Source of the DNA: Gnetum montanum
Taxonomy: Eukaryota; Plantae; Gnetophyta
Reading direction: 5' to 3'
Length of the DNA stretch: 64,000 nt
NCBI GenBank assembly: GCA_015680685.1
Contig: MNCI01000775.1
Span: forward strand, 78,251-142,250
Shown: one piece after another, positions 4,761 to 57,989 of the stretch
Numbering within the stretch: the stretch's first letter is position 1
Layout of the letters: each line of letters starts with the position of its first letter
Program-made: the position numbers and the translations under genes
The notes under the pieces: generated by a model
Databases searched by the model: none
What the model was told of the DNA's origin: nothing
The model's input: only the letters and a program-made list of their open reading frames with translations

Positions 4761-4799
4761 AGTTCAACATCTCTAGTGTTTCGTGATAGTGTAGCCAAA

Positions 4800-5859: not shown

Positions 5860-6260
5860 ATGACTATAAACTAGCATACCTCATCCTTGGGTCATGAAGT
5901 TAAATTGGAACAATAGCTCATCCTTGGGTCATGACATTAAATTAGCACAACAACTTTTTATTTGATCATGATGTTAAACTGGCACAACAACTCATCCTTG
6001 GGTCATGACGTTAAACTGGCATAACAACTCATCCTTGGGTCATGTAGTTAAACTGGCACAATAGCTCATCCTTGGGTCATGATGTTAAACTAGCATAATA
6101 GCTCATCCTTGGGTCATGATGTTAAACTGGCACAACATCCACTATCCACTATGACATTAAACTAGTGTCCAGTAGTCTTCTAGGACTATAAACTAGCACA
6201 TCATAGTCTGCTAGGATCTTAAACTATGTTTACAGTCTACCAAGACTTTAAAATAGTATG
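5860..6260. repeat. 3'-UTR tandem array, 37-bp units (CATGATGTTAAACTGGCACAATAGCTCATCCTTGGGT) grading into ~30-bp units
   Basis: TCATCCTTGG recurs at 37-bp spacing (5881, 5918...); core TTAAACTRGCA. Confidence 0.92.
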
Positions 6261-17197: not shown

Positions 17198-19041
17198 TGT
17201 AGCGACCGAAAACATCAGTGGCTAGAACACAGAGAGGTTACTGGGCCATGCCAGATAAAATAGAAGTGGGGTGCCCTGAACGGTCTAGTCAATCAGATAG
17301 GGACTTAATCAGTGTAACCTAACCTTACGTGAATGTTGTTTTGAATGCGAAATACACGAGGTAAAATTGATGATCAATACATGCAAGAATGAAGGAAATG
17401 ATGCCAAACAATGATAATAGTAAAGAGATAATAGAATAAACTCAGGTGAGAAAATGCACTACCCCAAGGTCACTGGTTTCATTCTTTGCCTTGTTTGAAA
17501 GATGTATAACAAGTTATACAATTCTAGAGGTGCATAGATAGTTCAAGAGTTACTAGAATGCTCAAAATGTGCTAGCTATGTTCTTGAATGCTAACTTAAA
17601 ATCGAACTACGCAAAAAGCCAATATGGAAAGCCAACTATGCAAAAAGCCAATCAACGAGCCAACTAAGCAATGCAAAAAGGCAACAAGACAAATGCTCTT
17701 GTCAATGCCAAAATGCCAATTCGTTGGGTGAAAATTGCTAACCAGAAAAGCCAACCCTTTGAGCATTTTTTACCGGGGTATTTATACGACCAGGAGTAGG
17801 TGAGAAATGAGGCCTAGATGCCACATGTCCTAGACCCCACGAGATGCTGACATGCCCATTCTACATAGATGTACAATGCCAATCGTGAACCTTGCTATGT
17901 TGTAACCATGTTGTCGAAACTACACATGCTAGAATCTGGTGTGCTAACAATGAAAGAAAAAATGAATTTTCCATCCTAGGACTACATCTTGCCTATCCTT
18001 ATGAATAGGATCAAGTGTAGCAAAAAATTTTCAGGGATGGACTAAGGGGTATGCTAGGTGGAACAAAGTTGCTAATCATGACAAGCTTAGTAATTACCAA
18101 CAAGTTGTAGAGCTAGCTAAAGATGTTTTGATGCCTCTGTCAACTTTGCATAACTTACACTATCTAGCACATTGAAGTAGCATAGCTAACTACTACGCTG
18201 TGCTACGCTACAGTGTAGCATAGCACATTGATGTAGTATAGCTACTTGCTATGTTGTGCTATACTATGTATCATAGCACAGCGTAGCTACCAGTTTGAAC
18301 AGGAAACTTGCGTTGGAGTCGACAACATTTTCCGAAAGCCTTGGCACACATCAGATTAACCTTTGGAGCATTTTATTGATTTCCATCTTTGCTATGCTAT
18401 GCTATGCTACGTAGCATAGCATAGTGTAGTGGCCAGTGTAACATGCATTTCTGTCAAAATTGTGAGGTTTCACAAGAAAATTTTGCTTGTGGTTTAAGAG
18501 CTAACTGAGACAAGGTAGTTTTGGAAACCACAATGCTGTTAGATGCACTCCTTTTGCCCAAATAGCTTGGCAGAGAAGTATTTGAGTGTTTTTCCCTTGC
18601 TACATTGTGCTATGCTATATAGTGTAGCTCCATATGTTTGTTGAATTCTAAATTTTCCTTGCATGAACATCTTGCCAAAACATGTATTCAGATACTTGAT
18701 TAATTTTTTGAACGCTTGCTACGCTGCACAGTGTAGCATCGTGTAGTAGGATTCTCAACTAGAAAACTTGCTAAATTGTTTTTTTAATCCTGACCACTTT
18801 TGATGATTCCTAGGATAGTTTCTGGTTAGACTATTAGCTAGGTGAATTGTCCAACTGGGTAGACCAGAGAGTCCATCAGGCCTATTAGCTTTGGAGATAG
18901 AAAACTTGCTGGACTAGATAGTCTAATCTTAGTGCCTACATTTTCCTGCCAAGTGGTCATGATGCTATACATGTGGAAGCTCTTGCCCAAATTCCAAGAC
19001 CCTAGTGAAGCAAGAGGATCTCAAAATTTTATGGTGTTTCA
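17198..19041 (-). repeat. 3' LTR of element B
   Basis: Minus strand TGAAACACC...GTCGCTACA termini; PPT-like CAAAGAGGATCTAG at 19042-19056; TATAAATACCCC near 17776-17787. Confidence 0.9.
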
Positions 19042-20414: not shown

Positions 20415-20810
20415 CCAAGTTTAAGGTCTTGGTAGATAGTCTGATGTGCTGGTTTAAGGTCCCAACATATTTCTATGCTAGTTTAAGGTCCTAGCAGACT
20501 GTTGTGCTAGTTTATCATCGTAGCAGATGATTGTTGTGCTACTTTAAGATCTTAGCAGGCCACTGTGCTAGTTTATCGTCGTAGTGGATAGTCGCTATGC
20601 TAGTTTAAGGTCATAGTAGACTGCCTATGCTAGTTTTACATCATATCAAATGTAATTTTCTAGTTTTACATCATGATGGATGGTCTGTGCCAGGTTATAG
20701 TCATAGCAAACTATCTATGCCAATTTATAGTCATAGTAGACTATCGTTGTGCCAGTTTATAGTCATAGCGGACTATCCCTATGCCTGTTTATAGTCATAG
20801 AAGACTATAT
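20415..20810. repeat. 3'-UTR tandem array of element B (~30-32-bp units, core TGCTAGTTTAAGGTC / TGCCAGTTTATAGTC)
   Basis: About 13 units directly readable; reverse complement of the core in arrays 5860-6260 and 46326-46460. Confidence 0.9.
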
Positions 20811-20829: not shown

Positions 20830-23800
20830 TAGATGTAGTATGGATTAAGATATAAGTGGTTCATAGGATGAACTCTTTGTCATCCATGTCTACCAATTTG
20901 AAGGCTCTGTTCCTATAGGATTTTGTAACCATGAATGGACCTTTCCAGTTGACTAAGAACTTGTTCACATGTTCATGGACAGCCTTGAGAATGAGGTCCC
21001 CCTTTTTTATCGACTGTTGACATGGGTTTTCATGATGCTTTTGTTGTTTCCTATCTTGATATCGCTCGATGTAGCCAAGTGTTTATGCATGCTCCTCCTC
21101 TATGGAGTTGAGGTCGATGATCCTTGACTCATTGTTCTAGGCTTCGTTCATGATGCTTGACAGGATCATTCAAAGTGACGATACCTGTAGCTCAAGAGGT
21201 AACATTTCTTCAAATCTATAAACAACGCTATAAGGAGTTTTACCTATTGTTGTTCTACATGTCATTCTATAAGCCCATAGCACATAGAGGATTTTCTCAT
21301 GCCATCACCTCTTGCTGTTGCTAAGAATTTTCTTGAGAAATTTCATGAAGGCTTTATTCATAGCTTCTTCCTATCCATTTTCCTATGGGTAGTGTGGCAA
21401 GGAAAAGGATTCTTAATGCCAAGGTTGCTGTAAAATTTTTTTGTTTTTGCACTATTAAACTGTGGCCCGTTGTCTATCACAATAGTCATGGGAATCCCAA
21501 ACCTTGTCACTATGTTTTCCAATATAAAGTGGCAAACTTGTTGAGATGTAGTCTTCCTAAGGGGGATAGCCTCTTCCCACTTTGTAAAGTACTTAGTGAC
21601 AATGATGATGAAGCTATGCCTTGTGGAACACTTAGGTGTGATAGGTCCTATAATGTCTAGTCCCCATCGTTGGAATGGCCATGTGATCTATGTCAGGTGC
21701 AACTCAGTAGGTGAAACATGTATAAGATTTGCATATCATTGGCACATGTCACAAGTCTTAACTTTGGCAAGGCAATCTCATTCCATATGAGGACAGTAAT
21801 ACCCTAGGAATCTAATTTTTGCTGCCATGGACCTTGGAGCTATGTGTCCTCCACACAGTCCTTCATGAACTTCATTAATGATCTTTTGCGCTTGTTCCTT
21901 ATGCATGCTAGCAATAACCCATTAAAGGAACATTTGCATAAGGCATTATCTCCCATAAGTACATATTGTTGAGCACACTTTCGGATCACATCCCTTTGGG
22001 TAGATGTCAATCTGTGTGGGGGCTTGCCATGTTGCAAATAAGCTTTAATGTTGGCATACCACTCTTGGGTATCGGAAGTTCTTATAAAGGTAACATGTAC
22101 TGCTTGTGTGATAGGCTTCGTACACTTAGTTATCGAAGTAGGCAAAGTCATGAATAGGTGTGGTGGTACATTTAATGCTAGGATGGCCAAGGCATCTTCT
22201 ACTATGTTCTCATTACATGGCACATGTTGGACATCTGCTGTGGTAAATTTCTTGAGAAAACTTTTGGCTAGGTCGCAATAGGATTGCAAATGAGTAGATT
22301 TTTAGGCATAGACCTCAGTGATTTGATTGAAAACGAGTTGTGAATCACCTCAAATTGCAAAGAGTTGAATTTTTAAGGCTTGAGTTACTAAGAGGCCCCT
22401 AAGGAGTCCTTCGTACTCTGCCACGTTGTTCGTACAAAGGAATGTGAAACGATAAGAAAACGGTTGAATGTTCCTATAGGGGAACATAATGATGGTACCT
22501 GCACTACCACCTCACATAGTTGAGGCATCGTTGAAATGCAAAGTAGCCTTGAGATGTAATGGGATAGAGTTGATGGTGTTAACATGCTCATCAAGAAATA
22601 TGGGTTCTATGATTGCTTGATTGTTGATAGGTGAGGTTGTGAGTTGCATAGCTATGGCTTTCCCTTTCATCAACGATTGGGTCACATAATGTAAATCAAA
22701 TTCCATGATTATCGCTTTCCACTAGGCTATCCTAATGCTTTCATATAAATTTTTTGTGATAGCCCAGAGTACATTACTTTTTCATATAATGTTGAATTTT
22801 CTATGGAATAGATAATGCCTCCACTTTTTCAATACAAACACTAGGATGAGGCAATTTCTTTCCACCTCATTATACTTTGGCTCGTATGCTATCAATGCAT
22901 GACTCAAGTAATAGACTGGAATCTCAGAGCCGTCATCTCTTCTCTGACACAATAGTGCTATGATAGACATGTCTGAGGTGGCAAGGTAGATGTAGAAAGG
23001 CTTATCCCTCTACGGTGGGTAAACCATTGGGAGGTGTAAAAGCTCTTTCTTTAGGTCATCGAAGGCTTGCTAGCATTGTGTTGTTCATTAGAAGTTAACC
23101 CCTTTCTTTAGTAAGTGTTGCATGGGGTGTAAATTGTTAGTCAACTGTTCTATAAACCTTCTAATGAATTGTACCCAACCTTGCAACCCACGTAATTCTT
23201 TAAGGTTGGTAGGCGGTGCTAGATTAACGATGACCTTAACTTTGTCAGGGTCCACTTGTATTCCAACCTTTGATACTACAAACCCTAGCATGCATATGAT
23301 TTTTACCCTGAAGACATACTTCTTTGGATTGAGGAGTAAGTGATGCATTAGGTAGTGTTTGAGGACTATACCTAGATCATTGGGATGGTCATCAACCTCT
23401 TTAGATTTGATCACTATGTCATTCACATAGTCGTTTAGTGTTTCTAGGATGTAGTCACTAAAGATGTATGTCATGACTCTTTCGTAGGTTGCTCCAGAAT
23501 TTTTGAGTTCAAAAGACATCATAATGTAATAGAAGGTACCCCATGGGGTCATGAAAGTGGTTGTTAACTAATGCTCTAGGTTGATATGAGTTTGATTGTA
23601 GCCGGAGAAACTGTCCATGAAGGATATTAGAGTATGACCAGCTGTAGTGTCGATAAGTTGATCAATACTCGATAGTGGGAAGTCATCTTTGATTGTTGCT
23701 TTGTTCAGATCTTGGAAGTCGATACAAATTTGTATTCCTCTTGTTTTCTTAGAAACTACAACAATTCTCGACACCCATTCTATGTAATCAACTACCTAGA

Positions 23801-24300
23801 TGAAACCAAACTGATACAGCTTAGTGATTTCATTTTATATGACCAATGTGATCTTTGGTTTAATCTTGTGAGCCTTTTGTTTAACTACCTTCACATGTGG
23901 GTCTAAGATAATATTATGCTATATGAGCCTTAGATCTAAGCTTGACATGTTATTATAGGACCATGTGAATACCTCAATGTTGTCTTGAAGGATTTTGGAT
24001 ACATCTTTATGCATTTTTAAATCTAGGAGGGAGCTATGTTTTAATGTCTTTATTTTCCCCCTAGATGTAGTCACAGGTGTTTCAATGAGAGGATCCTTAG
24101 TTACATCCTTGACCTCTAAATATATGGCTTGGACCAGATGTTCGGGCCAGTCTGGGGATGTTTCTAAGGATGCAAAAGTGCTATCGGTGGATGATTCCCA
24201 GTCTATTGACTCTAGGTTTAATTATCTTGTAAGCTCGCAATGTGGGCCTGCCAAGGCTAAAAGTGAAGATAGATCATTATGCATGGCCATTCTTGCTCAA
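20830..24300 (-). pseudogene. pol: Decayed pol of element B: RT (~23000-23950), RNase H (~22600-23000), additional archaeal-type RNase H (~22130-22560), integrase (~20830-22050)
   Basis: ICIDFQDLNKATIKDDFPL, FMDSFSGYNQ, TPWGTFYYIMMSFELKNSGATY, DYVNDIVIKS, PVYYLSHAL; aRH LHFNDAS...CTNNVAEYEGLLRGL...GDSQLV; INT HEGLCGGH, WPFQRWGLDIIGPI, GIPMTIVIDNG, KFLVNWKGPF. Confidence 0.95.
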
Positions 24301-24424
24301 CCTACCATAATAAGATAAAAGCCAAATCAAATGATACCTGTTTGTAGCAATCAGTGCATAGTAAACATTTGCAAAGTAACAATAAGATATGAAATGGTTG
24401 AAATAATTGTGAACTATGATAGAA

Positions 24425-24665
24425 AGTTCACAAGCTACTAGTTTAAGGTCATAGAGGACTACTTGGATGTAGATTTGTAGTTTAAAATTGCTAGTTTAAG
24501 GTCTTTGCGAAGTGCTAACTTGGTAAAATTGTGAGTTGTAATTGTTAGTTTACGGTCTTTACAGATCATTAATAGGTTAGGTTTGTAAGTCAAAAAAATT
24601 AGTTTAAGGTCTTTGCTTACCGCTAATAGGTTATTCTTGCAAAGGTAAGTTGCTAGTTTAAGGTG
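24425..24665. repeat. Array of GCTAGTTTAAGGTC motifs (~55-bp period) upstream of the antisense gene
   Basis: Motif at ~24438, 24491, 24545, 24600, 24652; single homolog at ~58795. Confidence 0.8.
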
Positions 24666-24790
24666 GGACTAAATTTTTGGTTGGGCCCACCTGCTATGCT
24701 GCAAACAGTGATGCTACGCTATGGAGGGAGTGCTACGTTGTATGGAACATCCCACATTAATCAAGGTGTGAAAATGGCAATTTCTTTTCA

Positions 24791-24812
24791 CCACGTTGGC
24801 TATAAATAGGGG
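24791..24812 (+). promoter_or_regulatory. TATA box (CTATAAATAG) with upstream CCACGT, promoter of the antisense gene
   Basis: About 140 bp upstream of ATG 24943; homologous TTATAAGTAG at 59081 in copy 2. Confidence 0.6.
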
Positions 24813-27536
24813 TTTATCCCTAGTAAACTCATCATTTTTGTTATAAGAGCACAAAACCCACATCCAGAGCATAGAGTGGTTGTATTGATAAAGAGCAAGG
24901 CGATTTAGCATAGTGATTAAGAGATAATTTGCAATCGAGAAGATGCCACCCAAAGGAGAATGTAAACACTAAGAACTCGCCAAGGTGGATGAGGTGAAAG
25001 ACACCTTGGGACGTCTATCCTAGGCGCACGTTGTAGTATGAGAGGAGACTCCATTGGCCTGGTAAGTTGCTACGCTACCTTTGTTTTCTAGGTTACTGTT
25101 GTTGTCTTTTCCTTTTTTATTCGTAATGAAATATGCATCTTCTATCATCTTTTTGGTTGTCATTTTGGCTGTTACACTGCCTCTATTGCCAATTCGGCAA
25201 TGATGGGTGTATAGATGCTACACTAAGGTTGCATGTAGTATTTCCCAGACCACCATTGTTGTGATTTCCTCGCTGCTAAGGTTTAGGTGTTTTTTGCAAC
25301 CTAGCACGTGAACAACGTAGCGTATAGCCCTTAGGAGGGTTTGGCCATGTGTGAGATTTGACAACATAACACATGTTTAATGCAGTGTAGTGCAAATCAT
25401 TTTGTATGGTAGAAGATTGGTTAAAATGGTAGTAGTATATTAAATTCCTTTTTATTTGAAATTCATATTTAAATTTTTTTTGTTACACTAGGCCAATGTG
25501 TTGTAAGACCTTTAGACAAATGCATCATTAATATCATGTTGCTACGCTATTGATCCTATGGTTCTGTTGGTGAATCTACCTTAGTTGTAAATCTGTTATA
25601 TTACTATGCTACGCTACATGTAAAGAAAGATTTTTGCTATGCAATTTTCTACTAGGGGCTTGTGCTATGCTACATGCAAATAAAGGGTTACGTTACGTTG
25701 TTTGCAAATGGATAATCATGCTATGCTACCTATGAAATCCACTCAAACATGATGCTAACATTTGCTATTCTATTGTGTAGGGTGATGTTAAAACCTATTC
25801 TAATTTTCCTAGAGATTGTAGGGGTTTTGTGCTACCTAAGTGAACCAGTGGCCAATGTTCGTCTACCCCATGCATGTGTGGAGCGGTAGGTGGTCTGGTT
25901 CTGGAAGGCATGCGAGACTTCCTACAATTCCTCCTCCAGCACTTTAGTGTGATCGTTTGGTCACACATATCAGTGAAGACAATAGCCACAATTACAAAAA
26001 TGTTGTTGCCCAGGGTGAACTAGGGTATTTTGAAATTTTTGACTGATGGGGCAATCGAGGGTGACCATGTAGAAGGGTCCAATAAACATCAAAAAAGCTT
26101 TAGGCATCTGAGTTGGATCTAGGAAAAGCCTGAGTATAAATGCTATCACCTGTACAACATGTTGTTCATTGCCCACCACATGGGCACCTATTTTTAGAAC
26201 CCACCAAGAACCATTTATTTTGTTAATGGGTGAGTTCTGTAAACGTATTCCATCACATTATGTAATGCATGCTACGCTAGGCAACAATGTTGATAGTGTA
26301 TGTGGTTTTTTTTGTTTGTTACCAGGTTTTATATCAACAAAGTGGGCATCGCGATGATACTGATGCCTTGGCTTTAGCACAGATGGCCTTGTAGGAATTT
26401 TCCTCCATTGGGAATGTGCATGCAGGAATGATAGGATAATGCGGGGGTGAGTACAAAACCTATCCAACCTAGTACTTTCAGTTTTATAGGAAGTGTAAGG
26501 AGACTAGTTGGTTGGATAGGGATTGGGCATCCCTTAGGCCAATCATCATTGAAGATGTTTTGGTGGATCTCCCACCATTTCCTTCACCATTTAAACTTAG
26601 TACGCTAGACCATGAATTTATGTTTGCATATTCGAGTGTTGTTTCATTTTTCTTCTATTTTTTTTGTTTAACTTTTTCTTTTCAAACTACTATAGAAGAG
26701 AAGAAATCCCAAGAGGTCACTGTGATCAACTCTAGTCATAATGAGGCCAACATCTATTTCAACTATGGGAAGGTGGACAAGACCCAATGCTGGCTCTGTA
26801 ACGGGACCAAAGACTCACGCATCAACAACCTTCAGGATGTTGGGCTTATGAAGTTTTTCTTAGCCATCAACCCAAGCATCCCTACTACTGAAATGCTTGC
26901 CCTAGACAACTCCTTTTCCTAAAGAGTAGATCACTTCTACACACATGTTCACAGTGTGCTAGTGATGCTTGAGATTAATGACCAACAATTTTTGGATATC
27001 TTTAGTGTCCCTTCTAATGGCCTCCCTATGGGAGCAAAGACCAAAAAGAAGAAAAACCATCAGGGGGACATTAAGGAGTGGCTAGGGGTAGAAAAGGGCT
27101 AAAATGGGATCCATATTGAAGAGGCCAAGCTAAAAGTGGCTAGAACGGTTTACCCCATCTTCCATGCCTGTGCTTTCCCCAAGCCACTCTTTGAAGGAAA
27201 AATCATTGGGATCGAGCAAGCTTGGATAATGAGGGAAGTCATGGAAGAGGGGGCCCATTACAATTGGGCCAAGCATCTTTGCAAAGGTCTGCAAGCTAAA
27301 ATGGTCAAGCTTCATAGGAATATTAAATCCTAAATCCCATTTCAATGTGCATCATGCTTTCTTTGTAGCCTACCTGCGGCGCTTCACAAAATTATTAGTA
27401 GTCCATGAGAATGAAGTCTAGGTGATACAGAATTGTAACCAGAGTTCTAAACTATGGATTTTTCAAGTTTTCTGTACCAACCAATCTCAGGAACCCCTAG
27501 AAGTTATTGGGAAATTATTTTCAATGACAACCATGG

Positions 27537-29675
27537 TGAAAACACCAAAAAATTTTGGCTAGCACTTTCAGACAGAAAATAGAGATAAGTCATGATGATC
27601 CCTAGCATGACCAAGCTCTAGAGCATCAGAAAAGCATCGAATGGAGCATAATTGAAAAGGAAAAAGTTTCTCAAGATCCACAGGTGACTACATCAGCATC
27701 TGGCATCATTAATTTCAATTTTTGAATTTCAAAATACTTTGTTTTGACCAAGTAGACTCTATTCATGTTGGGCTGTATGCTGGCCAACGTATAGACCAGC
27801 GTATGGCAACTTTTGGGCCCTAAAAATGAGTCAAAACATGCCATAATTGAGCATCTAGACCTCCCATGACCTTCCCCAAGCTCCCTAGAAGCTCTTGGCC
27901 TCCTAAAAATTCAATTTTTGGTCCTAAATGATGCAATTTCATGTGTATACGCTAGGAACACCTTGGTATACCCTGACCAGCGTATAGCCCAGCGTATACC
28001 ATCAAAAAGGGCCTAAAATAGGCATCACAGAGCAACATGTTCACATCAAATCAACTCTTGGAAGTAGGAAAACTATTGAGCATCATCACTAGCTCCTAAA
28101 GATCAAGTTTTGACCTTGAAATGTTGCATTTTCATGTGTATACGCTAGGTACACCTTGCTATACGTTGGCCAACGTATAGCCCAGCGTACACCACCATGA
28201 ACGGGGCAAATCAGGAACTTTTGGGCAAGTTTTCAACCTAGAATCAATCCTCAAGACATGGAAAATAATTCTACAAGGACATAGTGTTCAGAAACTTCAG
28301 TTTTAAGCTTCCAACGAGCCATTTTCACCTGTGTATGTTGAGCACACCTTGGTATACGTTGGCCAGGGTATAGCTTAGTGTAGACCACCAAAACAAGCCC
28401 AAAAATGCATCAAAATGAAGTCAAAATTAGCATCTGGACACCCTGGAGCATTATCAGAACTTAGGCATGAAGGGAAAATCACCAACGTACAAAGTAAAAC
28501 ATCCAACATGGTAGTTCATGAGGTGTACGCTGAGGTTGATGCTAGCCAGTGTATAGCCTAGTGTCAACCCACAAAGTCCTCCAAAATAGCACCAGATTAG
28601 GGGAAAATCGGCTCAAATTCAACATACAACACCCTTAGGATAGGATCCATGTAGATATATAGTCAAAATTGGCTTTGGAGGTCAAAATTTGGACCATTTA
28701 TGATCCATACGTTGGCCAGCGTATGGGGCGTATAGAGCGTATATGCCATCGTACACACGCTAGATGCCCAATATCATATGCTAAACACTGTACGCAGATG
28801 CCAACACACGCTAGAGAATTTGAAGACATGCTGAGGCCAAAAAAAGTAGGCCAGAGCATGGATCTAGAAGCCAGAGACATCATTCTTGTTGTAACATACA
28901 AATCCTTTTGTATGTTTTAAGTTTTTTGAGCGTTTCAAGCCTATACACTGGGTGTTCATATGCCAGCATGTATGCTAAATGCTGTACAGTTGTAACGTAT
29001 CCTACACTTGGTCAACGCACCACTTGTCTCCCAATCTAAATTTTTCTCACCTCACAACCACTCATCTCCTTCCAGATTCGAATCTAACGCCCGAGATCTT
29101 ATAAAAATCCCAATTTTTCACTAGATCGAGGTTGGCAATTTTTGATAAAGGGACATAAAAACTGGAATCTGTGAGACTTAGCAAATCTGGGCATCAACTT
29201 CTGTACACTGGGCATTAGACTTGGATGCTACATTTCCTTGCAACCTAAAACCTACACCTACTAGCACCCGTCATCACCCACTAGGGCTAAACATCCACCT
29301 TGTGATCAATCCACAACTACATTTTGATCAGTGCACACTGTAATCATTTTACAATAGAAAACAGTTTATATTTTTTCTAGATTTATTGCAGTTTTATTTT
29401 TTCTTCTAGTTTACATTTACATTCCCATTTACGTTATTGCACCTGTTTACATTACAGTTTACATTTAATGTGCATCGTTTATGTATAACCTAATGCATTG
29501 CAAAGTGCGTACATTGGGGAAGTCCTCATTTGATCCACACATAGACCATTCAAGGTACTCTACCTTCGTTGATTCCAGCTTGCCCTCAAGCGAAGGTAGG
29601 GTCTTCTGTATTTCTTCTGAGTTCTCCTAGTGTTTGTTTCATTCTAGCCTTGCACCAACGATTTCGGATGGTACA
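27537..29675 (+). mobile_element. Solo LTR (2139 bp) of a Tat-related family inserted in exon 4 of the antisense gene
   Basis: TGAAAACACC...GATGGTACA termini; perfect 5-bp TSD CATGG (27532-27536 and 29676-29680); flanks rejoin colinearly with the uninterrupted 61550-61790; no coding motifs inside. Confidence 0.93.
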
Positions 29676-30114
29676 CATGGATCGAGTGGTGTACAACTTC
29701 CATGGCCAAGATAGCATAGGAGAGGTGCCCCGTACTACTATGGAAAATGTATCATAGGATAAATGCCTCATTGTAGAGATGGTGGCAACTAGGTTGTAGT
29801 GTAAAAGATCTTACCCAGTTGAGGAGCCTCCCCATACGGGTGAAGAAGGGGGACAAAAGCTATGGTTCAAACTTTGCAGAATGTAGCCTCCCATTGGTAA
29901 ATACTTTCTCTTTTTATTTGTTAACTTATTTGTTTGGTTAATGCTTGCTACACTATGCTACACTAGGTAGTGTAGCATAGCATAGCATTTTTTTCAAGTT
30001 AGTATGCATTTTCCTAATGTGCCATGTTTTATTAGCAAAGGAAGAAGAAGTAGAAGAAGGTGAAGAAGAGGTGACGACACCTGAAATAGGGGCAACTCAT
30101 AAATATGCGGGGGC

Positions 30115-30350
30115 CCAACCATAGAGGAAAGGGCCACGATCAAGGAAGAAGGAGCTCCTACCGCAAAGGAAAGGGCTCCCGCCCATGAGGAGAATGCTCC
30201 TACTAACAAGGAGGATGTTCCTACCAATGAGGATGACACTCCTGTTGATGAGGAGGATGCTCCTATCAATGAGGAAGAGGTTGATGCCATAGAAATGAGG
30301 GTCCCACTGAATAAAGAAGAGGCCTTTGTCAATCAAAAATAGGCCTCTGG
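30115..30350 (+). repeat. 21-bp coding tandem repeat (P-x-N-E-E-D-A heptapeptide)
   Basis: ...APAHEENAPTNKEDVPTNEDDTPVDEEDAPINEEE... on the plus strand. Confidence 0.8.
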
Positions 30351-32024
30351 CGACAATCCCTTCTCTGAGTGTAGTTCAACACTAGAAGAGTAGATGAATG
30401 CAGAGAGTGTTGCCATGCTATTGAGTTAGCTAGAAGGAGGGGAGTTACAACTTGATGCTGGTGAGTTTTATTTTATATTTGATAGTTTGTTGATGGGCAA
30501 CCCCCTCGCTATCACCCCTAAGGATTTGCTAGGTAGGATCTTTACACTGTTGTTTGCGTTGCTCATCAGCTTTATTATAGTCCTCTCGGTCATAATTTTT
30601 GTTGACAAGTTTTTTTATGTAGCAGACACTACTGTTGACACTGCAGGCCCTTCTTTAATTTGCTTGTGACCATGGGCTAAGACCCCTGATAAGTTTGCCT
30701 TCATGCAGGGTGTGGTCGACAACATGATCAACTATCTAAATCAGATCAATCTAGAAGTGGGTCAGTGAAGTAGCTATGCTAGGCTTTTTAAATTGCTAAA
30801 CTTTGCTATGCTACTATGACTAATGCCTTTTTGAATGCAGTTGATAGCATCTCTCTACTGTGACTAATGCCTTTTTGAATGCAGTTGATAGCATCTTGCC
30901 TAAAGTGGGATCCTAAGCAAGAAATGAAGGTTGATGTCGTGCCTGCAATCCCACCAGAAGTGACCAAAGTACCTTGTCACATATATGATGAGGCTAGTGA
31001 ATGTGTGTTGTACTCGGCATGCTCCTTGTGGGAGTGCAAGAATGTTAACGAAGACGTGTGGAAACGGATCCAGAGGCTTGAGAAGGAGAAGGTAAATCTA
31101 ACCACCAAGGTGGGAGACCTCCACTCTAGGAATGAGTTCCTTTTGGTCTAGGATACCAACGATGGTAGTTGGCGCATGACTGTCATTGATTACATAAGGT
31201 ATTGGATGATCATGTGGTGAAACAACAAGGCCACATGTGAAATAATATTGTAGTGTATGCAAATGGACTTGTTGGCCAAGAAGAACAAAGATTGGAAAGA
31301 TAATAGTGGAAGAGTTTATGAGTGGGGGTAGTCACAGAAAAACCATAAGCGTATGTAAAAATTGGAACATACCACCTACCGAAAATAGTATCAAGATGCT
31401 TTTGTTAAGTTGTATACACATGAAGTGTTCTTTGATGTCATTGGCACTTCTAGGGCTTACAACAAGTTCATGCAACAAGTGATGGTTAGTGAATCCCCTG
31501 AATGGGAAGTGAGTTTCCCCATGGGTGAGACCGCCACTGCTTCCTTTTCTCTAGGGCCACTAAGATGGAAAACTATTGAAAAGGAGTAAGTTGTAGCAAA
31601 AACTGACTTGGAAGATAGGCACTAGGTGGAAATTACTAATGAGGAGGTCTAGCAGCCCCTCGGGACTAGCTTGGATAGCATACCCCTTGAGACAGACGTG
31701 GGATCGTCTTGGGTTAGTCACTTTTTTTGATGCAACGATTTATTTTATTCTAGTTTTTATTGTGACTCTAGCTAACTACTTTAATTTCTGTGATATAGAA
31801 TCTGGATGAAGATACAAGGCCCTCTGAAGGAGGGAACAATGGTGCAAAGTAAGATGATGGAGAAGAAGACTCGTAGTATGACAGCAAGGGATTTTATTTG
31901 AATTTTTTAAAAAATATTGTAAATATTAATTGGTTAAGACTTTAAAAGGAAGATAAACTGTGACAAAATTCATTTTATTTTGGCTTGTGTATTATCTATG
32001 TTATCTGTTTTTATGTTTTTTTTG

Positions 32025-32235
32025 TCTTAGTTTTAGGCCATTTTGGGCCATTGTCAGGTGATAAGAAATTTTTTTTTATTTGTTTGTTTTTTTTGAATAG
32101 CTAGTTTTAGGCCTTGGTGGGCCGCAGTGATAGTTTAAGGCCATTCAGGGCCATTGCTAGTTTTAGGCCATTTCGGGCCATCACGGAGGTGCAAGGTAAA
32201 GAATTTTTCTAGTTTTAGGCCTTAGCAGGCCATAA
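32025..32235. repeat. Array of AGTTTTAGGCC motifs downstream of the antisense gene
   Basis: Motif at ~32029, 32103, 32132, 32159, 32211; variant of the AGTTTAAGGTC core. Confidence 0.8.
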
Positions 32236-32441
32236 AATACATGAACGAAGTACACGACACAAATAATATAAATACAGAGGACATTAAAGCTAAGGATGGA
32301 TGTAAAGCAAATAGTGCAAGTGCAGAGAAGTGTGTGTAAAGGGTAACGTAGCTACACTAATGTGGACACAGTTCAATTTTGAAGTTGCTTTTTGATCCAT
32401 CATGGGTTTAGCAATGTATAAATCCAAGGAGCCTTGTTGTG

Positions 32442-35400
32442 CTATTCCTCTATGCTATTGTCTGTTGGCTGAAATGGAAGTTCCAGCCACATCGTGACTT
32501 CATTTGTACCATTTTTAGCTTGTTTAGGCACCTCCATTTGAATGGGGGATTGTTCTTCAAAGACTTCAATATCTGAACCTTGCTCTACCCTCACATTGTT
32601 TATGGTCCAAGGAGTTACTTCATCGCCATGTATCACCACTTTTCCTCCTACATAGGATAAATGGATCTCTTGATGTATTGGTAATGAAATGGCCCTAATT
32701 TGGGCTAACCAAAATCTCCCTAAAATCAAGTTGAATCTTGGCATCTCCTCTACCACTATGAACATTGTGTTTGTGGGGAATTGGTCCCCTGCGACAAAGG
32801 TAATTTGCACAGTCCCTTTTACCTACACTCGTGGCCCATTAAATGACTTTAGGTAGGATGTTGTTGTGGGATTAATTTAACCACAATGGGAAAAGGGATG
32901 ACATTGGCTTGGCACCATCATCAATGTGCACTCTTCAGATCTTGTGTTGGCCAACCTAAATTGTAGTAAACATTGGTGTTGTTATCACCTGATCCTTTTC
33001 AAGGTCATCTTTAATGGACCCGTCAAAAAATGTTAACTAAGTTGTTCCCAGTTTTTTGGATGTAGGAGGGAGCATAACTGCATGAATTGCTTTTTCCTCT
33101 GCCAGTATGCTTTCGTCCATAGATATGGATGTCAACATACGAAGCAAGGCCTCATAGTATGCAGTGGAGGTCATTACCAGGTCGTACAGGCTCAAAGTTG
33201 TATTCTTCTATTTTAGAGCCTACTTGACTTGAGCAAGGGCATATAACAAGTCCTTCTTGCCTTCTTATTTATTACTACCCTTCTCTTCCTCCATTCATCC
33301 TAGGAGATAAATTTCTCTAGGAGGAGGGGTTTTAGGTTTGGGGTTGGATCTTTTTGGATGCATTGGCGATGATTGCTTGGATGTAGCGACATCAGCTATT
33401 GATGAAAAGGGGGGTGAAGGCATGGAAGATGAGGAGGTAGGCTTAGGGGAACTTGAGGCGACATGTTGTTTAGCTTCCTTATCCATTAGATGATCTTCCC
33501 TCTTCTTTGAATGGGAAGGCTATGAGGTTGTCTTGGCTTAACTATGTATGGTGAGGGTAGTTGATTGTTTTAGCCCCCTAATGATAAACAGTGTTTCTGG
33601 AGTCAGTGCAAGTGGTCGTGTGGTTTTAAACATGAAAGGTGTAGGGGCGGATGTTTGAGAGGGAACTTTAAGGACAAATGGTTGTTGTGGTATCTTTCTA
33701 GAAGCTAGTGGTGTTGGTGCACTACACTGAGGCATGTAAACAACAAATAGTAGTTGAGGTGCTTTGGGATTACTGTCTACACCAATGGTGTTGATGATGT
33801 AGTCGATGTTGTTAGCATTAAGTGGGTATGTGTAAATGTGCATAGATTGATTCTCAGAATACACAGGGTTTCTTTCATCTAGAACAAACTTCCCTTGATC
33901 AATAATTCGTTGAATGTTGTCCTTTAATGCTAAATAGTAATCCATGTGGTGACCACAAAGTTGATGATAGTCACAAAATTGCTCCAGCCTAAAGTTCTTA
34001 GGAACTGGCAGCTCGTTGGGCATAGCAAAATAGGGGTTCCTAAGGAGCTCATAGTACCATTGATTCCTTTTGGTTGCCTCCTCTAACATCTTCTTGTGTT
34101 GAATGTAACTTTCCCCTAGTAGTTTCTTCAAAAGTTCTGAAGGCTTAATAGGTAGCAGGGTTTATTTAGAGAAATATTTATGGTCAAAATTGGGCTTAGC
34201 TGGGGTGGATGCTTCAGGTGCCAACATGGAGGGTTGAGCGGCATTGCTTGGGCAAGGCACAAATTTAGTTGACGTAGTGGCTACCTTTTTGTTGTTATTG
34301 TTGTTGGGCTTGGCCTCATTCGCCACAATGGCCACTGTGGCTGTTGCATCCTTGCCCTTCTCTTTTTCCTTCTTAGTATATGTGTTTTTATATACAACAT
34401 AGACAAGATATTTACCTACGTTAGTTGCATCTTGAATGCTCTTGGTCTAGGAAAAAGCTTGACTAAGAGTTCGTGGAGCTAGGTAGTATAGTTTGNACCA
34501 CACCACCAATGGTGGTTTCCCTTGTAACTCCATAATCATTTGCATCATTCCCAGGTCTGGACCAAGCATTCCAACTGATCTAGATCCTTATTGAAGAAAT
34601 TAAGTGCATGAAAGCTTCTAATTTTGACATAGTACAAGTTATGGACTTCTACCATGATGATCCCATTAGCCCAACAGTCCCCATGTTCACATTATCCTCC
34701 AGAATGCCACTCGTTGACTTTACAAAATACAACAGGGAGGGTGACCCCAATGCTAATCTCGTGATGTTTAGATCTAAGTACCTTCTACCAAAACAATGGT
34801 TGCACACCATCATCCATGTCTTTGTTATGTCTCTGATGGGCAAAGCTTTAGACTGGTACCATGCACTTCCATGCTCTTCTATCTCGATCCTAGAGGAGTT
34901 GTTGACTCAATTCGTAACTCATTTCAAGTATAACTTGAAACCATAGGTTAAGCTGGATCACTTAATGAGCATTAAGAAAGATCCACTAGAATCAGTCCAA
35001 AAATTTATATAGTGGTGGAGCNGCATTGGTGGTGCCATGGGATAGGTTTTTTATGTGATCGATGGGGAAGACCATAGTCCCATGCTTGGTTGTACCATTT
35101 GTGGGACCTGGTACACTTGATGGTGAGCTTAATGTGATATTTGGGAAGGTTATGAAGTAGGGGGAGAAGTGATTGGGATCCACCATGTGGCTAGGGGTGG
35201 GCCTACCACTGATGGTGGAATAGGTGTAGATGTTGGAATGGAAGTGAAAACTTTATGCAACTGTGACGTAGGTACCGTGTGCATGTAAGGTAGGGTACCC
35301 ATGATCGGTGCTTGGTACAATGAAGGGATAGATTGGGGAATAGATTGTGGAGTGATAGTGCCTAGAAATGAGACAGAGGAATAGGCATGTTCATATCCTG

Positions 35401-35879: not shown

Positions 35880-38330
35880 GGGGAGATCATACATGTTGAT
35901 GGCTTTATGACAAAATGTGCTTGGGTCATTGCCACAACATGCTGCAAGGCTCTAACCATGAAAGGTGTCATGGGCATCCTAGGTGATGCCTTAATGACAA
36001 AGTGGGCCTATGGCCTAGTTGATGCTAAGGCTTCAATATCATTGGAAGGCACAAAAACCACAAATGGTTCATTTTTTAGCTCTATGTTTCCATCAATGCT
36101 GATAGCATTAATGGTATATCTTGCACTCCTAGCATTCAATGGATCCTTATAAATATTCATCCATTGGTTATCTGATCAAAAAGGATTACTTTCATTAAGG
36201 ACTAGCTTTCCTTGATCAATAATGCATTAGATAACATCTTTTAATGCTAGGCAATAATCTGTGTCATGGCCATGTAATTGATGATAGTTGCAGAACTAGT
36301 CTAAAATTTTTGGGTGCTAGAGGCTTATTGGGCATAGCCATAGAGGGGTCTTAGAGGATCTCGCAGTACCTTTTGTGACATTTATGGGCATCTTCTGACA
36401 TATTCTTTTGTTGAATGTTCCTAGCACTAAGAATATCCAATAATTCTAATGGCTTAAATGGAAAAGGGGTATATTTTAAGTAATCCTTACACTCAAAGTT
36501 TGGCCTTGATGGAGCTTGCCCTGTGACCATTGATAATTCAGGTTGGTTGGTTCCCACGTTAGTATAACCTAATGTTTTGTTGGTAGCGGCTAGGGCCTTA
36601 GGCACCTTGGCCATCTATTTACAGCCACTATAGTGGTTATCATGGCTTTACCCTTTTCCTTATCTCTCTTTGCATGTGCATTCTTGTAAACTATGTAAGT
36701 TGGATTCTTACTAGCCTCTGCTACATCTTATATGCTCCTTGTTTGAGCAAAGCCTTGGCTAATGGAGTGTGGGACTAAATAATATAGCTTGGATTTAATT
36801 GAATTGTTTACAATGCCCTTAAAAATGGCTAGCAAGTGGATTTTAGCAATTGGCTCACAAATCTCATTTAGGAGGTGCTCTAAGTTTGTATGAATTTTTG
36901 CACGGGTTCTGGCGCTTCTTGCTTAGCATTCATGAGCTTGTCCAATGTGGCTTCTGGATTCAAGTTGTACTTGAAGCAGGTTACAAACTAGATTAACAAC
37001 TCCTCTAAAGTTGAAATGGAAGCTTGAGGAAGTGTGTGATGCCAATCTGAGGCTTTGCCAGTCAAAGACATGGTGAAGACATAGATGACTGCATGTGGCC
37101 ATAGTTGCAATAACAAAGACTTACAATGAAAAGTGACTAGGTGGGTGTTTGGGTCACCCTCTCCATTGTATTTCATAAATTAGGGAAGCTAGATTCCAAG
37201 AGGCAATGTGAGCAGAGGAACGATGGGGCTAATAGGATCATACTAATAGAAGTCCATTACATGGACTATTTCAAAGTTGGCAACTTTAAGCCACTTGACC
37301 TCCTTAGTGAGGGTTTGAATAAGTTGAAATGCTTGATATAGACTCAAGAATATTGTAGAGGGTTACATTAGTTGTACTATTGGTGGTCCTGTTAGAGTGG
37401 CTACTAACCCCATTGGGGGTGCTATCAAAGTAGTCCATAGCCCCATAGTTGGTTGTGCCATATGTGATGCTTGGTACATTTGCAACTGCATGTATAGCAG
37501 CCTCTAGGACAATTGAAGAGTAGGAAAAGATGTTGCTACCCACCACTTGATTAAGGTTTGAGCTATTGTTGGTGGTGGGACTTACATAGAAGGGATAATG
37601 GAAACAGGGCTTGTTTGTGGCTACAATATGGGCATAGTATGCCCATATGGCAATGTGGGTGTCATAGACACTAGCTACAAAAATTAACTAGATTACAAGG
37701 GAATAATAAAGAGAGGGGAGGTAGAAGGCCCTACATTCTATTGCATTGACAACATTTTGTGGCTACCTACCACTAGCAAAGATTTGGTATATGGAAGTAT
37801 CATAGCCATCATCAAGGAGGTAGAAGACTATGACTAATGTGATAAGAACATAGAGGTAGATGGTGGGGCCAAGGCATAGAGTGGGCCACCACCGTTGAAA
37901 TGGGATTCAAACTCCTCCTACCCATCTTGGAGGCACTTGCCATAGTGTGATGTCATGTCTTGCTTCTTTGGCCCACTCATTTGGGTATGTTGGTCCAAGA
38001 TCCATTGGAAAATTTTAGTGAGTGGTATAACCATGTTAGGGGTGGGAAGGAACTCCTACCCATTTTGGTGTATAATTTTGAAAATATGCTTTTCTTCCAT
38101 TTCTTGGTGGTCCACTGGTAGTCCCACTTGCATCTTTTCACACAAAAAGTTGTATCATTCTTCATCAAGTGCCATGTGTTTAGGCAATTGGTGCCAATGT
38201 CTAAAAGATTGTCATTGTGGTCACACTGAGCTAGGTGGTTGCTCAAAATCCACTACATGTTGAATAGGGTGCACCACCTCTAGGCTTAATGTGGTAGCCG
38301 AGGTGTTAAAAAGGTTAATTTTCATTATGT
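35880..38330 (-). pseudogene. gag: Decayed gag of a second Tat element (D), 3'-truncated
   Basis: MKYNGEGDPNTHLVTFHCK...WHHTLPQASISTLEEL (ORF 36988-37176); FCNYHQLHGHDTDYCLALKD near 36240-36300. Confidence 0.88.
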
Positions 38331-38797: not shown

Positions 38798-40654
38798 TAG
38801 GACATTTGGAAATGTCAATGGTTGGAACACCTAGAGGTCATCAAGTGTATAACCTAACCCCAAGTCTGTGGAAGGGCTATGCTAGAGAAAATGGAAATAG
38901 GATGCCCTAAATAGTCTAGTCGATTAGATAAGGACTTACATGGTGTAACAATAACCATTTTCAAAAGCTTGAAAATATTATTGCGAATTAGGAGAAAATA
39001 TATCTTAATAGTGAAAAACATAGGCAATTATACTAAAATTTGAAACAAATGCTAAAGGAAAATGAAATGAGAGATTAAGTAAAGAAATGCACCACCCCAA
39101 GATTGGTGGAACTTGACTTCTAATTAATCAATGTGTGAAATTGGTACATAGTGTCAAATAGGCATAGTGGGGTAATGTGGCATTGTGGTCACAGTCTCTG
39201 GGACATTGTGGAAATGATGCTAGTAGCTACAAAAGAGGCTAGACCTAGTGAGCTTATAGTTGTCATGCTATGCGAGTGCTAGGAAGACTACATCATGATG
39301 CTCAGTAAGGTCTCAAGCTTGAATGCTCAGGTGTGAGAGTGATGAAGATGGTAATAGTGTTCTAATGAGTGATGCTTAGAATGATTTGTAGATCATCAAC
39401 CCACCCCTAAAATGTTGATTATTGGGGTATTTATAGAGTTAGGGTTGATGGGAGATGTGGATTGGGTGTTGCATGGCCTAGGTCCCATGTAGCATAGATG
39501 GGAATAAGTCACACTGACATGCTATGCTCAAAGTGTCAAGCTCTAAGTGTCAAGCTCAATGGTATCACACTCTCTAGGGTAGGAATGAGAATTGAGAATT
39601 TTCCAAACTATGACCACAACCCACAGACTGCATGTGCCAAAGTCTAAGGGATTGCCATGTACCTACAAACAATGCCAAAATAAATTCAACTTGGAGTCTA
39701 TGCTCTGGGAATATGTCTTTCCCCTCTTCCATGTAGGGTAAAGCATAGGAACAATTTTGAGGATCAATAGGGGGTGCAAAAATAATGAAAACTCATAATC
39801 TTGGCCACTGAAAGGATGTCAAATCTAAAATGAAGGTTGATGCTAAGTTTTGGGAACTTCTGGAGGCATTTGAAGGCATTTTCCAAGTGTCATGTTGTCT
39901 ACACTACATAGCATGATGGAGTGTAGTGTGAACACTTCGAAACTTTTTGTAGATTTTGTCTTGTCACATTATCTACATTGTGTAATGTAGCAGAGCGTAC
40001 CACCCACATTTTGATGAATTTTGCCAAAATTTGCAATGTTTCTTCATGGCACCCTGATCACAATCTAAGGGTAAAATAGGACAAGTAGCCTTGGAAGTCA
40101 AAAAATTGCTAAATGCACCTTACATGTCTAGATAGCTTGATAGACTTTTGGTCCAACACTTAGAAAAATTTGAGCCCTAAAACTTATGCTACATTATCTA
40201 TGCTATGTAGTGTAGCAGAGCATAATAGGCCAAAAGATAGAAAATTTTTCAAACTACTTTTTTCATGTTGAGCACCTTTGACAACTCCTAGCCTAGTACT
40301 TAGGTGGACTGGAAATTGAGACATGTGTCAAGATGGATGAGCTAAGGAGCATAGCAAGCTTGATAGCCCAAGAGATAGAAAATTTTCCAAACTATTTAGT
40401 CCATCGTCAATGCCCTTTGACTACTTCTTGCTTGACATTTGTGTAAACTGGCCTTGGACGTAGGCACTATGCTAGTTATGCTAGGGACTATAGCAAGTAG
40501 ACTTAGAAAATTTTTGCAAAGATCAAGACTTACAATGTGCTACGCTATCTACCTTGCATAGTGTGACACTAGACTTGGAAAAATTTTGCCCAAGATTTGA
40601 CACTTGGATAAATCTACCATTGAATTGCAAGGGCTCAAAATTAGTGGTGTTTCA
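38798..40654 (-). repeat. 5' LTR of element D
   Basis: Minus strand starts TGAAACACCACTAATTTT; colinear inverted homolog of 48022-49839; TATAAATACCCC near 39424. Confidence 0.9.
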
Positions 40655-57970: not shown

Positions 57971-57989
57971 AAAAAATACAAAATACAAT

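Follow-up and report, generated by a model that had tools for sequence, protein, structure and literature searches.

The closest described systems are the antisense extra ORFs of Tat-lineage LTR retrotransposons (Grande gene23, RIRE2, Retand), which are known as aORF-3R or eORF-3'R and often belong to Transposase_28 (PF04195; PMC7264820, PMC11963269, PMC6317226). Each is a single, uninterrupted frame located downstream of pol and before the 3' LTR, runs antisense to gag-pol, and is conserved across its family. Tandem-repeat arrays occur close by, and these ORFs are presumed to have a regulatory, accessory function (PMC7264820, PMC11963269, PMC6317226). In Grande, the antisense ORF is served by an internal promoter of its own. 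PMC11963269 also discusses antisense genes of retroviruses. One survey, which uses a working definition of at least 250 codons for an additional ORF, shows that the spacer of Ogre elements is non-coding and has a mean length of 274 bp (PMC6317226). The Ogre polyprotein is split at this spacer into gag-PR and RT-RH-INT, and in Ogre and Retand a second, added RNase H is placed between RH and INT. ORF1 of Ogre precedes gag in sense orientation, and in 57% of elements it carries the PMD. HTLV-1 HBZ is a bZIP accessory protein of an animal retrovirus, encoded on the proviral minus strand with its promoter in the 3' LTR. The HBZ transcript is spliced and has one intron. To our knowledge, plant LTR retrotransposons have been described with extra genes only in the form of single ORFs, either upstream of gag or downstream of pol.

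The gene described here is found in two elements, B and F, and is probably an antisense, intron-bearing, selected gene that belongs to a Tat/Ogre-type element. We regard it as a variant of the antisense extra ORFs of Tat-lineage elements, with introns, a position within pol, and a NIF-like domain. Like those ORFs it runs antisense to gag-pol and belongs to the same broad lineage, and its putative TATA-like box is comparable to the internal promoter of Grande. In contrast to them, it lies between PR and RT in B and by the RT start in F, comprises at least four exons and at least three GT-AG introns, and has a NIF-like domain, whereas its pieces gave no profile match to Transposase_28. The location is the point where Ogre elements carry an intron, and the polyprotein is split as in Ogre. 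Unlike the Ogre spacer, the one found here is 8.15 kb long in B (from the protease-like end at 32445 to the RT frame start at 24290) and at least 3.3 kb in F, and contains a gene on the opposite strand; its splicing on the sense strand is presumed. The gene also differs from Ogre ORF1, being antisense and within pol. It resembles HBZ as a retroelement accessory gene that is antisense and predicted to be spliced, although the two have no homology. The initial annotation regarded the architecture as undescribed, and our literature search likewise found no antisense gene between PR and RT, nor any paper describing a NIF/FCP1 domain in an LTR retrotransposon.

The window analysed is a stretch of 64,000 nt from Gnetum montanum contig MNCI01000775.1, and all coordinates refer to it (Table 1). 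Elements B and F are old, diverged Ty3/gypsy LTR retrotransposon copies, probably of the Tat/Ogre type. Both are dead, and their nucleotide identity is only 60-70%. Element B has the order PR-RT-RH-INT on the minus strand, with RT, RH, and INT identified through Pfam and PR by motif reading only. The aRH-like piece between RH and INT (21843-22301) matches RVT_3 weakly (E 0.081; 13.3 bits, below the cut-off of 21.6). The gag-PR frame of B, which ends at the stop 32442-32444, is separate from the RT-RH-INT frame, which opens at the minus-strand ATG 24290-24288. This RT-side frame starts directly 3' of an AG/GT context, its ATG is conserved in both elements, and B 23591-24169 has 69% nucleotide identity to the RT-side frame of F. 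Among RTs in the protein database, the nearest reach just 46-49% identity. The segment at 32445-32822, which gave no match in Pfam, is taken by us to be protease-like from its motifs, and an active-site-like I-D-D-G-A occurs further upstream in a different frame. The gag region likewise gave no match in Pfam, and part of gag is inverted in B. No LTR pair around B was found in the self-comparison of the window for direct repeats; B is old and rearranged. The assignment of the gag-PR and RT of B to one element rests on order and orientation.

Table 1. Features of elements B and F and of the antisense gene in the window.
Feature	Coordinates	Strand	Basis and remarks
RT-RH-(aRH-like)-INT block, element B	21361-24290	-	Pfam
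Integrase core (rve), element B	21361-21687	-	Pfam
RNase H (RT_RNaseH), element B	22785-23009	-	Pfam
RT (RVT_1), element B	23091-23567	-	Pfam
Array of five TAGTTTAAGGTC-type motifs	24439-24665	+	Between gene promoter and RT frame
TATA-like box TATAAATA, element B	24802-24809	+	Read from sequence; 141 nt upstream of ATG; putative promoter
Exon 1 coding part, element B	24943-25061	+	119 nt; phase-2 donor GTAAGT at 25062; vs F 59196-59314, z 6.9
Intron 1, element B	25062-25780	+	719 nt (F 548 nt); z 3.7, GC 0.36, T 0.39
Exon 2, element B	25781-26229	+	NIF/FCP1-like; vs F 59863-60311, z 21
Intron 2, element B	26230-26342	+	Acceptor 26342/26343 keeps frame; z 0.9
Exon 3, element B	26343-26599	+	257 nt (F 254 nt, 60426-60679); z 12.7; phase-1 donor at 26600
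Intron 3, element B	26600-26695	+	96 nt (F 106 nt); 52% T; z 2.3; frame kept in both copies
Exon 4 conserved part, element B	26696-27532	+	Helical domain; vs F 60786-61615, z 35.8
B-specific segment inside exon 4, ~2.2 kb	27533-29700	+	F has ~25 nt here
193-bp tandem array in B-specific segment	27772-28724	+	Inside the gene; B only
Resumed similarity to F exon 4 end (F ~61640-61801)	29700-29897	+	tblastx, weak; donor-like GTAAAT at 29898
Putative 3' exons of initial annotation	30036-31876	+	Acidic repeat region 30103-30339; stop-free pieces 30879-31148, 31389-31586
Array of five TAGTTTTAGGCC-type motifs	32028-32221	+	Between gene 3' end and PR
Protease-like domain, C-terminal half, element B	32445-32822	-	Motif reading; stop at 32442-32444
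gag C-terminal region, element B	33541-34161	-	Resembles second gag at 36130-36512
RT-side frame, element F	57946-58688	-	ATG at 58688-58686
Gene copy F	59196-61804	+	Exons 59196-59314, 59863-60311, 60426-60679, 60786-61804

The ~8-kb spacer of B contains the plus-strand gene with TATA-like box, ATG, and GT-AG introns that had been reported in the initial annotation. The claim that F carries the same gene at a matching place by RT is confirmed. The distance from this ATG to the gene ATG (24943 in B) is ~650 bp in B and ~510 bp in F. The counterpart of the TATA-like box in F is TATAAG at 59082-59087, 114 nt upstream of the gene ATG. The TAGTTTAAGGTC-type motif has 23 matches in the window against 1.4 expected. 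Exon 1 has the proposed length of 119 nt in both copies, and introns 1-3 are at matching positions with phases 2, 2, and 1 and homologous donors, also as proposed; five of the six donors read GT[AG]AGT. The frame was said to be restored at every junction, which is true of junctions 1 and 3. Junction 2 had been placed at 26325/26326, where the earlier AG of B (26324-26325) breaks the frame. It is in frame only with the acceptors 26342/26343 in B and 60425/60426 in F, and exon 3 starts at 26343, not 26326. Exon 2 is now 449 nt in B and F and was presumably 450 nt originally, with a 1-nt deletion in each copy (near 25902 in B and near 60233 in F). The intron interiors cannot be aligned, in line with the initial reading by eye, and have z values of 0.9-3.7 between B and F compared to 6.9-35.8 for the exons. 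The introns have a lower GC content (0.27-0.36) and are T-rich (T 0.39-0.52). Splicing and promoter use of the gene are predicted on comparative evidence.

The comparison of B and F covers exons 1-4, and exons 5-8 come from the initial model and are putative. Similarity between the copies is gone past ~61950 of F. The region 27533-32440 of B has no counterpart in F, apart from the resumed stretch near 29700-29862 and an inverted piece of 130 nt. The pieces within 30036-31876 have no counterpart elsewhere in the window and no Pfam match.

Mismatches between B and F over 530 codons are distributed as 189/140/284 across codon positions 1, 2, and 3 (chi-square 52, p = 4e-12). Position 3 is the most variable in all nine blocks, and position 2 is never above position 1. 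The initial annotation inferred a selected, element-encoded gene and named dN/dS near 1, conserved introns, and nested-transposon termini as evidence to the contrary. The inference is supported by a pN/pS of 0.41 for the frame as annotated (shifting it gives 0.82 and 1.09), by unconserved introns, and by the lack of terminal repeats, with the test comprising a single copy pair whose synonymous sites are saturated. The RT of the same pair has a pS of 0.667, a pN of 0.234, and a ratio of 0.35. We infer from these values that the gene is inherited with the element under protein-level purifying selection of about the strength seen in RT. Synonymous divergence is alike in gene and RT (pS 0.71 and 0.67), which suggests joint divergence of gene and element instead of two acquisitions or a recent nesting. 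The shared position and exon structure, together with the RT-like selection and synonymous depth, indicate that the gene was in the element before B and F split and was kept working during their divergence.

The same data bear on the reading that there is no gene, and that the conserved blocks represent either sense-strand coding sequence, such as an additional RNase H located between PR and RT, or cis-acting RNA. TatI and TatII elements do have an added RNase H at this place (PMC6317226), and since nucleotide identity is close to 65%, tblastx matches occur in every one of the six frames. This reading is very improbable, since the least variable plus-strand codon position is 2 and the most variable is 3, whereas in a minus-strand frame sharing this wobble site, position 2 would fall on plus position 1. 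Stop depletion is confined to the plus frame (9-13 compared to 20-43), and the blocks are edged by plus-strand GT-AG and separated by T-rich, unconserved stretches. In addition, an aRH-like piece is already present between RH and INT.

A separate nested transposon, or a host gene that lies between retrotransposon fragments by chance, has a similarly slight probability. The region is pieced together from old, rearranged elements, and the gene in B has a copy-specific insertion of 2.2 kb with a tandem array, both of which would fit such an origin. In contrast, the distance and orientation of the gene relative to the RT-frame ATG agree between two elements of only 60-70% identity, and the divergence of the gene equals that of RT. 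The block has no terminal repeats, as neither inverted nor long direct repeats bounding the B spacer were found. A tblastx search of the window for further gene copies gave B and F alone, with no copy away from an RT.

Both copies are pseudogenes. Over 528 aligned codons, B has 13 in-frame stops and F has nine, and none of these 22 sites is common to the two. The first stop in B is codon 10, at 24970-24972 in exon 1. The other five frames contain 20-43 stops. The two copies decayed independently, after their divergence. No intact gene copy is present in the window, as neither B nor F has an open frame. Four RNA runs from the same species, three of them poly(A) RNA-seq, were compared with 23900-27700 at a likeness of at least 85%. 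Splice junctions were absent from the 17-195 reads over this region, nearly all of which are less than 90% alike, partial, and from diverged relatives. A read pile-up in X1 at 26567-26693 reflects T-rich low-complexity sequence.

The gene product comprises a short basic N-terminus, a NIF/FCP1-like HAD domain, and a C-terminal helical domain. Protein searches were made per exon or per piece and not with the joined spliced protein. Exon 2 matches Pfam NIF (PF03031) at the same profile positions in both copies, with E values of 0.028 (B) and 0.047 (F). Only stop-free pieces were scored, and the scores of 14.5 bits (B) and 13.8 bits (F) are below the gathering cut-off of 21.8. An exhaustive phmmer search with the F exon-2 piece against 1.84 billion proteins gave two matches. 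P0002 (E 1.8e-4) is the only real one and is a bona fide NIF protein (2.9e-15 against Pfam NIF), while P0001 is a spurious repeat protein. Pairwise BLASTP with P0002 gives 1e-14 across 93 residues from motif I. The piece is collinear with NIF/FCP1/SCP HAD phosphatases from motif I through the following helix and strand. Tim50 is a non-catalytic member of this family. Both copies differ from the family in their sub-threshold Pfam score and in the replaced catalytic DxDxT, with motif I reading D-I-V-G-I in F and E-I-V-G-V in B compared to D-L-N-G-L in P0002. The later acidic pair, D-D in P0002, is replaced by A-R in F and A-H in B, in an alignment that is collinear but weak. If folded like NIF, the exon-2 product would be a pseudo-phosphatase. 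An AlphaFold2 model of a 102-residue F piece, made from a four-row alignment, has a mean pLDDT of 51.2 and a pTM of 0.32 and is too poor for use as a fold. Among solved structures, only chance intein matches (E at least 0.1) were obtained.

The language-model features of exon 4 are closest to the land-plant clusters DUF1985 (0.91) and PMD (0.85) in the Atlas, which is a lead only. A second Atlas query with the first half of exon 4 gave nothing usable. Membership in PMD (PF10536) or DUF1985 (PF09331) was rejected, as no exon-4 piece of B or F has a Pfam match at E up to 1. A word-based search with an exon-4 piece gave no matches, and neither this search nor phmmer with the F exon-2 piece found a homologue of the gene in other genomes.

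The NIF-like domain is of cellular origin and the structure with TATA-like box and introns is host-like, which would agree with a passenger: a host gene transduced once with its introns into an ancestral element, of no service to it, and with a weak or residual selection signal. The capture of host gene fragments by LTR retrotransposons is known (reviewed in PMC7264820), and neither an intact copy nor a transcript was seen here. This origin is considered unlikely, since the codon periodicity and the low pN/pS come from differences that arose after the split and thus after capture, and the ratio matches that of RT at equal synonymous depth. A useless segment of 2-3 kb should have decayed or vanished over that time.

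Under the preferred reading of a selected gene of the element, the Tat/Ogre-type lineage would have its polyprotein region split into gag-PR and RT-RH-INT, and the spacer would carry an opposite-strand gene with at least three introns. A TATA-type promoter belonging to the gene would drive a transcript antisense to the genomic RNA, and this transcript would be spliced. Its introns would outlast retrotransposition as they are present as reverse complements in the sense genomic RNA, and hence cannot be spliced there. It is a sound inference that the antisense orientation would protect the introns from loss, and the gene may have kept several of them through many rounds of RNA-mediated copying because it is antisense. 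On the sense strand, the whole spacer is probably similar to the Ogre intron, and would be removed in Pol mRNA and kept in packaged RNA. Surveys for long uninterrupted ORFs would overlook such intron-bearing genes.

The gene couples selection of RT strength with a cellular-type domain that lacks its catalytic residues. A tentative proposal for its role, which we hold possible but somewhat short of an even chance, is a non-catalytic accessory factor that binds phosphoproteins and influences the expression of its own family in trans. Partners related to the RNA polymerase II CTD are one conceivable route by which it could affect transcription, RNA processing, or the escape from silencing. With transcripts and an intact copy, the gene would become a testable case of a retrotransposon that takes up and retains a host-derived regulator.

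A more specific and doubtful proposal, to which we give little credence, is that the protein is the element's own chromatin or transcription factor. It would consist of a dead NIF/FCP1-type phosphatase domain, which would bind phosphorylated partners (the RNA polymerase II CTD, for example), fused to a PMD/DUF1985-like DNA-binding domain that recognises the TAGTTTAAGGYC motif arrays of the family. If this is true, the protein could shield the element from silencing or control the splicing or read-through of the giant sense intron. It would then be the transposon's equivalent of the PMD-PP7L (phosphatase-like) module of the host, placed inside pol and antisense so that its introns survive reverse transcription. 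The TAGTTTAAGGYC motif arrays flank the gene and also come after the integrase.

The plus-strand gene between the protease (PR) and reverse transcriptase (RT) modules of element B, a minus-strand Tat/Ogre-type Ty3/gypsy LTR retrotransposon, is genuine and evolved under selection in the past. Among Tat-lineage retrotransposons it is a variant of their antisense accessory genes, and both copies are decayed. The surrounding plant DNA has a GC content of about 38-41% and is crowded with old retrotransposons. A weak RVT_3 match at 21843-22301, between the RNase H (RH) and integrase (INT) domains of B, suggests a second RNase H there, as in Ogre/Retand. The gag and PR pieces of B were assigned by motif reading only, because Pfam gave no match for either; an I-D-D-G-A site lies slightly further up from the retropepsin piece, in a different frame. 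The PR-side frame has its stop at 32442-32444 and the RT-side frame its ATG at 24290-24288, a distance of 8.15 kb. This ATG lies a few bases past an AG|GT context both in B (24288-24310 (-)) and in F, a second, diverged element in the window (58686-58710 (-)), and the first residues of the RT-RH-INT frame are homologous between the two. Such a start fits either an Ogre-like acceptor or separate Pol initiation. The N-terminal part of gag beside B (34555-35009 (+), vs 37343-36889) is on the strand opposite to its C-terminal part, and a second gag, 66-67% identical, occurs 2-3 kb further along (33813-34203 vs 36130-36512); B is either rearranged or interleaved with another element.

Coordinates of element B domains, gene exons and motif arrays in the window
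Feature	Element B or window	Element F	Strand	Basis or remark
RT	23091-23567		minus	Pfam
RNase H	22785-23009		minus	Pfam
Integrase core	21361-21687		minus	Pfam
Gag, C-terminal part	33541-34161		minus	motif reading; upstream on that strand
Retropepsin, C-terminal half	32445-32822		minus	motif reading
Exon 1	24943-25061	59196-59314	plus	119 nt in both copies
Exon 2	25781-26229	59863-60311	plus	449 nt in both copies
Exon 3	26343-26599	60426-60679	plus	
Exon 4	from 26696	from 60786	plus	
TAGTTTWAGGYC arrays	20417-20612, 24439-24665, 32028-32221; also 2617-6226 (-), 46353-46457 (-)			
TGCTAYRCTA tandem arrays	12-509, 7651-8134, 18201-18617, 40208-40547, 48203-48491			other non-coding element parts

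In B, the gene opens with TATAAATA (24802-24809) and has its ATG at 24943; conserved blocks bordered by GT and AG come next. Self-comparison of the window found a single other copy, that of F, as the initial annotation had proposed: the RTs of F (57996-58573) and B (23591-24169) share their orientation and match at 69%, and the order of the gene blocks next to them is also shared. Of the six donors in B and F, five have the sequence GT[AG]AGT. The initial annotation had splicing restore the frame at every junction. This holds for junctions 1 and 3, which keep the frame in B and F at exactly homologous positions, but not for junction 2 at its acceptor 26325|26326; there it is the acceptors 26342|26343 (B) and 60425|60426 (F) that preserve the frame. 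Since exon 2 carries one single-base deletion per copy (near 25902 in B, near 60233 in F), its ancestral length was probably 450 nt, giving phases 2, 2, 1. These phases agree with the earlier reading, as does the equal length of exon 1 in the two copies. The intron interiors, said earlier not to align by eye, are indeed unalignable: global alignment of B and F against shuffles gives z = 6.9, 21.1, 12.7 and 35.8 for exons 1-4 and only 3.7, 0.9 and 2.3 for introns 1-3. Intron 1 measures 719 nt in B vs 548 nt in F. The introns have a GC content of 0.27-0.36, vs 0.42-0.50 in exons, and are T-rich (T 0.39-0.52) like plant introns.

Over 530 codon-aligned positions, mismatches between B and F at codon positions 1/2/3 number 189/140/284 (chi-square 52, p = 4e-12), with position 3 highest in nine of nine blocks and position 2 never above position 1. 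The order 2 < 1 < 3 fits a plus-strand frame. If the frame were on the minus strand and shared the wobble site, its second codon position would coincide with plus position 1. In-frame stops in the coding frame number 13 in B and 9 in F among 528 codons, and 20-43 in the other five frames. An explanation of the conserved blocks as sense-strand coding or cis-acting RNA does not fit, as it is contradicted by the codon periodicity, the stop pattern across frames and the GT-AG block borders.

Nei-Gojobori proportions for the gene between B and F are pS 0.708 and pN 0.288 (ratio 0.41), vs ratios of 0.82 and 1.09 in the shifted frames; for the RT leader and N-terminal RT of B and F, pS is 0.667 and pN 0.234 (ratio 0.35). 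Synonymous sites are saturated, so all these values are proportions and not distances. The gene is as diverged as RT at silent sites and nearly as constrained, and because of this it must have been in the element before the B/F split and kept coding while B and F diverged. A useless passenger is hard to square with a ratio of 0.41 across a divergence with saturated silent sites, but the signal comes from one copy pair, a thin basis. Within that one pair, the ratio and the conservation of exons above introns sustain the earlier claim of a selected gene. Its other claim, that the gene is element-encoded, also stands. An independent nested transposon, or a chance neighbour of retrotransposon fragments, is excluded by a position common to two deeply diverged elements, by a gene divergence equal to that of RT, and by a spacer in which no repeats were found at the ends. 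Both copies are dead. The earliest stop in B is at codon 10, and none of the 22 stops is common to B and F, as expected if each copy has been decaying after its own insertion.

The 3' half of the gene differs between the copies, whose alignment breaks off at about 27532 in B and 61615 in F. The middle of exon 4 holds 2.2 kb in B, from 27533 to about 29700, that F does not have. Within this segment, a 193-bp unit is repeated in tandem about five times (27772-28724); such arrays are typical of internal regions in Tat-lineage elements. Weak similarity resumes between B 29700-29862 and F 61640-61801. Beside this last aligned stretch, a 130-nt piece, 77% identical, is inverted between the copies (B 29548-29676 vs F 61926-61794), a sign of either a rearrangement or an old inverted repeat with one arm kept per copy. 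In F, all similarity to B is gone after about 61950, and the sequence from 62897 matches a different element in opposite orientation. Putative exons 5-8 of the initial annotation (30036-31876) are plausible by eye, with T-rich gaps that have GT and AG borders; they have no second copy within the window and no Pfam domain match. In the putative 3' part of the B gene, an acceptor-like site (TGAATGCAG) occurs twice owing to a 44-bp duplication (98% identical, 30811-30896).

All protein searches were run exon by exon or piece by piece with the natural sequence of each copy. Exon 2 matches Pfam NIF below threshold at the same profile positions in B (E 0.028) and F (E 0.047). Exhaustive phmmer with a 102-residue F piece against 1.84 billion representatives gave one real match (E 1.8e-4), P0002, a bona fide NIF member that itself matches NIF at 2.9e-15. 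The pairwise alignment of the two begins at motif I and is 93 residues long. Motif I reads D-I-V-G-I in F, E-I-V-G-V in B and D-L-N-G-L in P0002, and the later acidic pair is A-R in F (alignment weak, order correct) and A-H at the same place in B. If the fold is NIF-like, the protein would have been non-catalytic already before the B/F split; the AlphaFold model of the NIF-like piece has a pLDDT of 51, too poor for fold assessment. Exon 4 encodes a helical region that matches no profile. The land-plant clusters nearest to one exon-4 piece in a language-model search are DUF1985 (0.91) and the plant mobile domain, PMD (0.85), a likeness that may serve as a lead only.

Antisense ORFs between pol and the 3' LTR are known in Grande, RIRE2 and Retand (PMC7264820, PMC11963269, PMC6317226), whereas the antisense gene described here is multi-exon and lies in the PR-RT spacer. 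In Ogre, the same site, exactly between gag-PR and RT-RH-INT, has a short non-coding intron of 274 bp on average (PMC6317226). The family described here brings the two arrangements together. No description of this architecture was found in the open-access literature, consistent with the initial annotation, nor any paper there linking an NIF/FCP1 domain with an LTR retrotransposon. Even the nearest RTs in the protein database share only 46-49% identity with that of the element, and neither exhaustive phmmer with the F exon-2 piece nor a word-based search with the exon-4 piece found a homologue of the gene elsewhere. The retrotransposon lineage is poorly sampled.

RNA runs from this species were aligned to 23900-27700 of the window. 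Matching reads are very few, nearly all <90% alike, and limited to the RT leader and those exon cores that are most conserved (25919-25963 in exon 2 and 24127-24173 in the RT leader); their loose ends resemble diverged homologous sequence. Relatives of the gene and of pol are therefore present in the RNA libraries of the species, but copy B appears silent in these runs. These few diverged reads show neither splice junctions nor the transcribed strand, which has no bearing on splicing either way.

Two short motifs are over-represented in the window. The 12-mer TAGTTTWAGGYC occurs 23 times vs 1.4 expected, with arrays at the coding-module borders of B (after INT, before RT and after PR) and on both sides of the antisense gene in the same orientation. 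These arrays may act as RNA signals or as sites of binding. The 10-mer TGCTAYRCTA occurs 45 times vs 0.7 expected; in the B gene it fills both the introns and the promoter region (non-coding parts of 24712-26279 and 29946-30813). Its copies at 29946-29987 make up a near-perfect palindrome.
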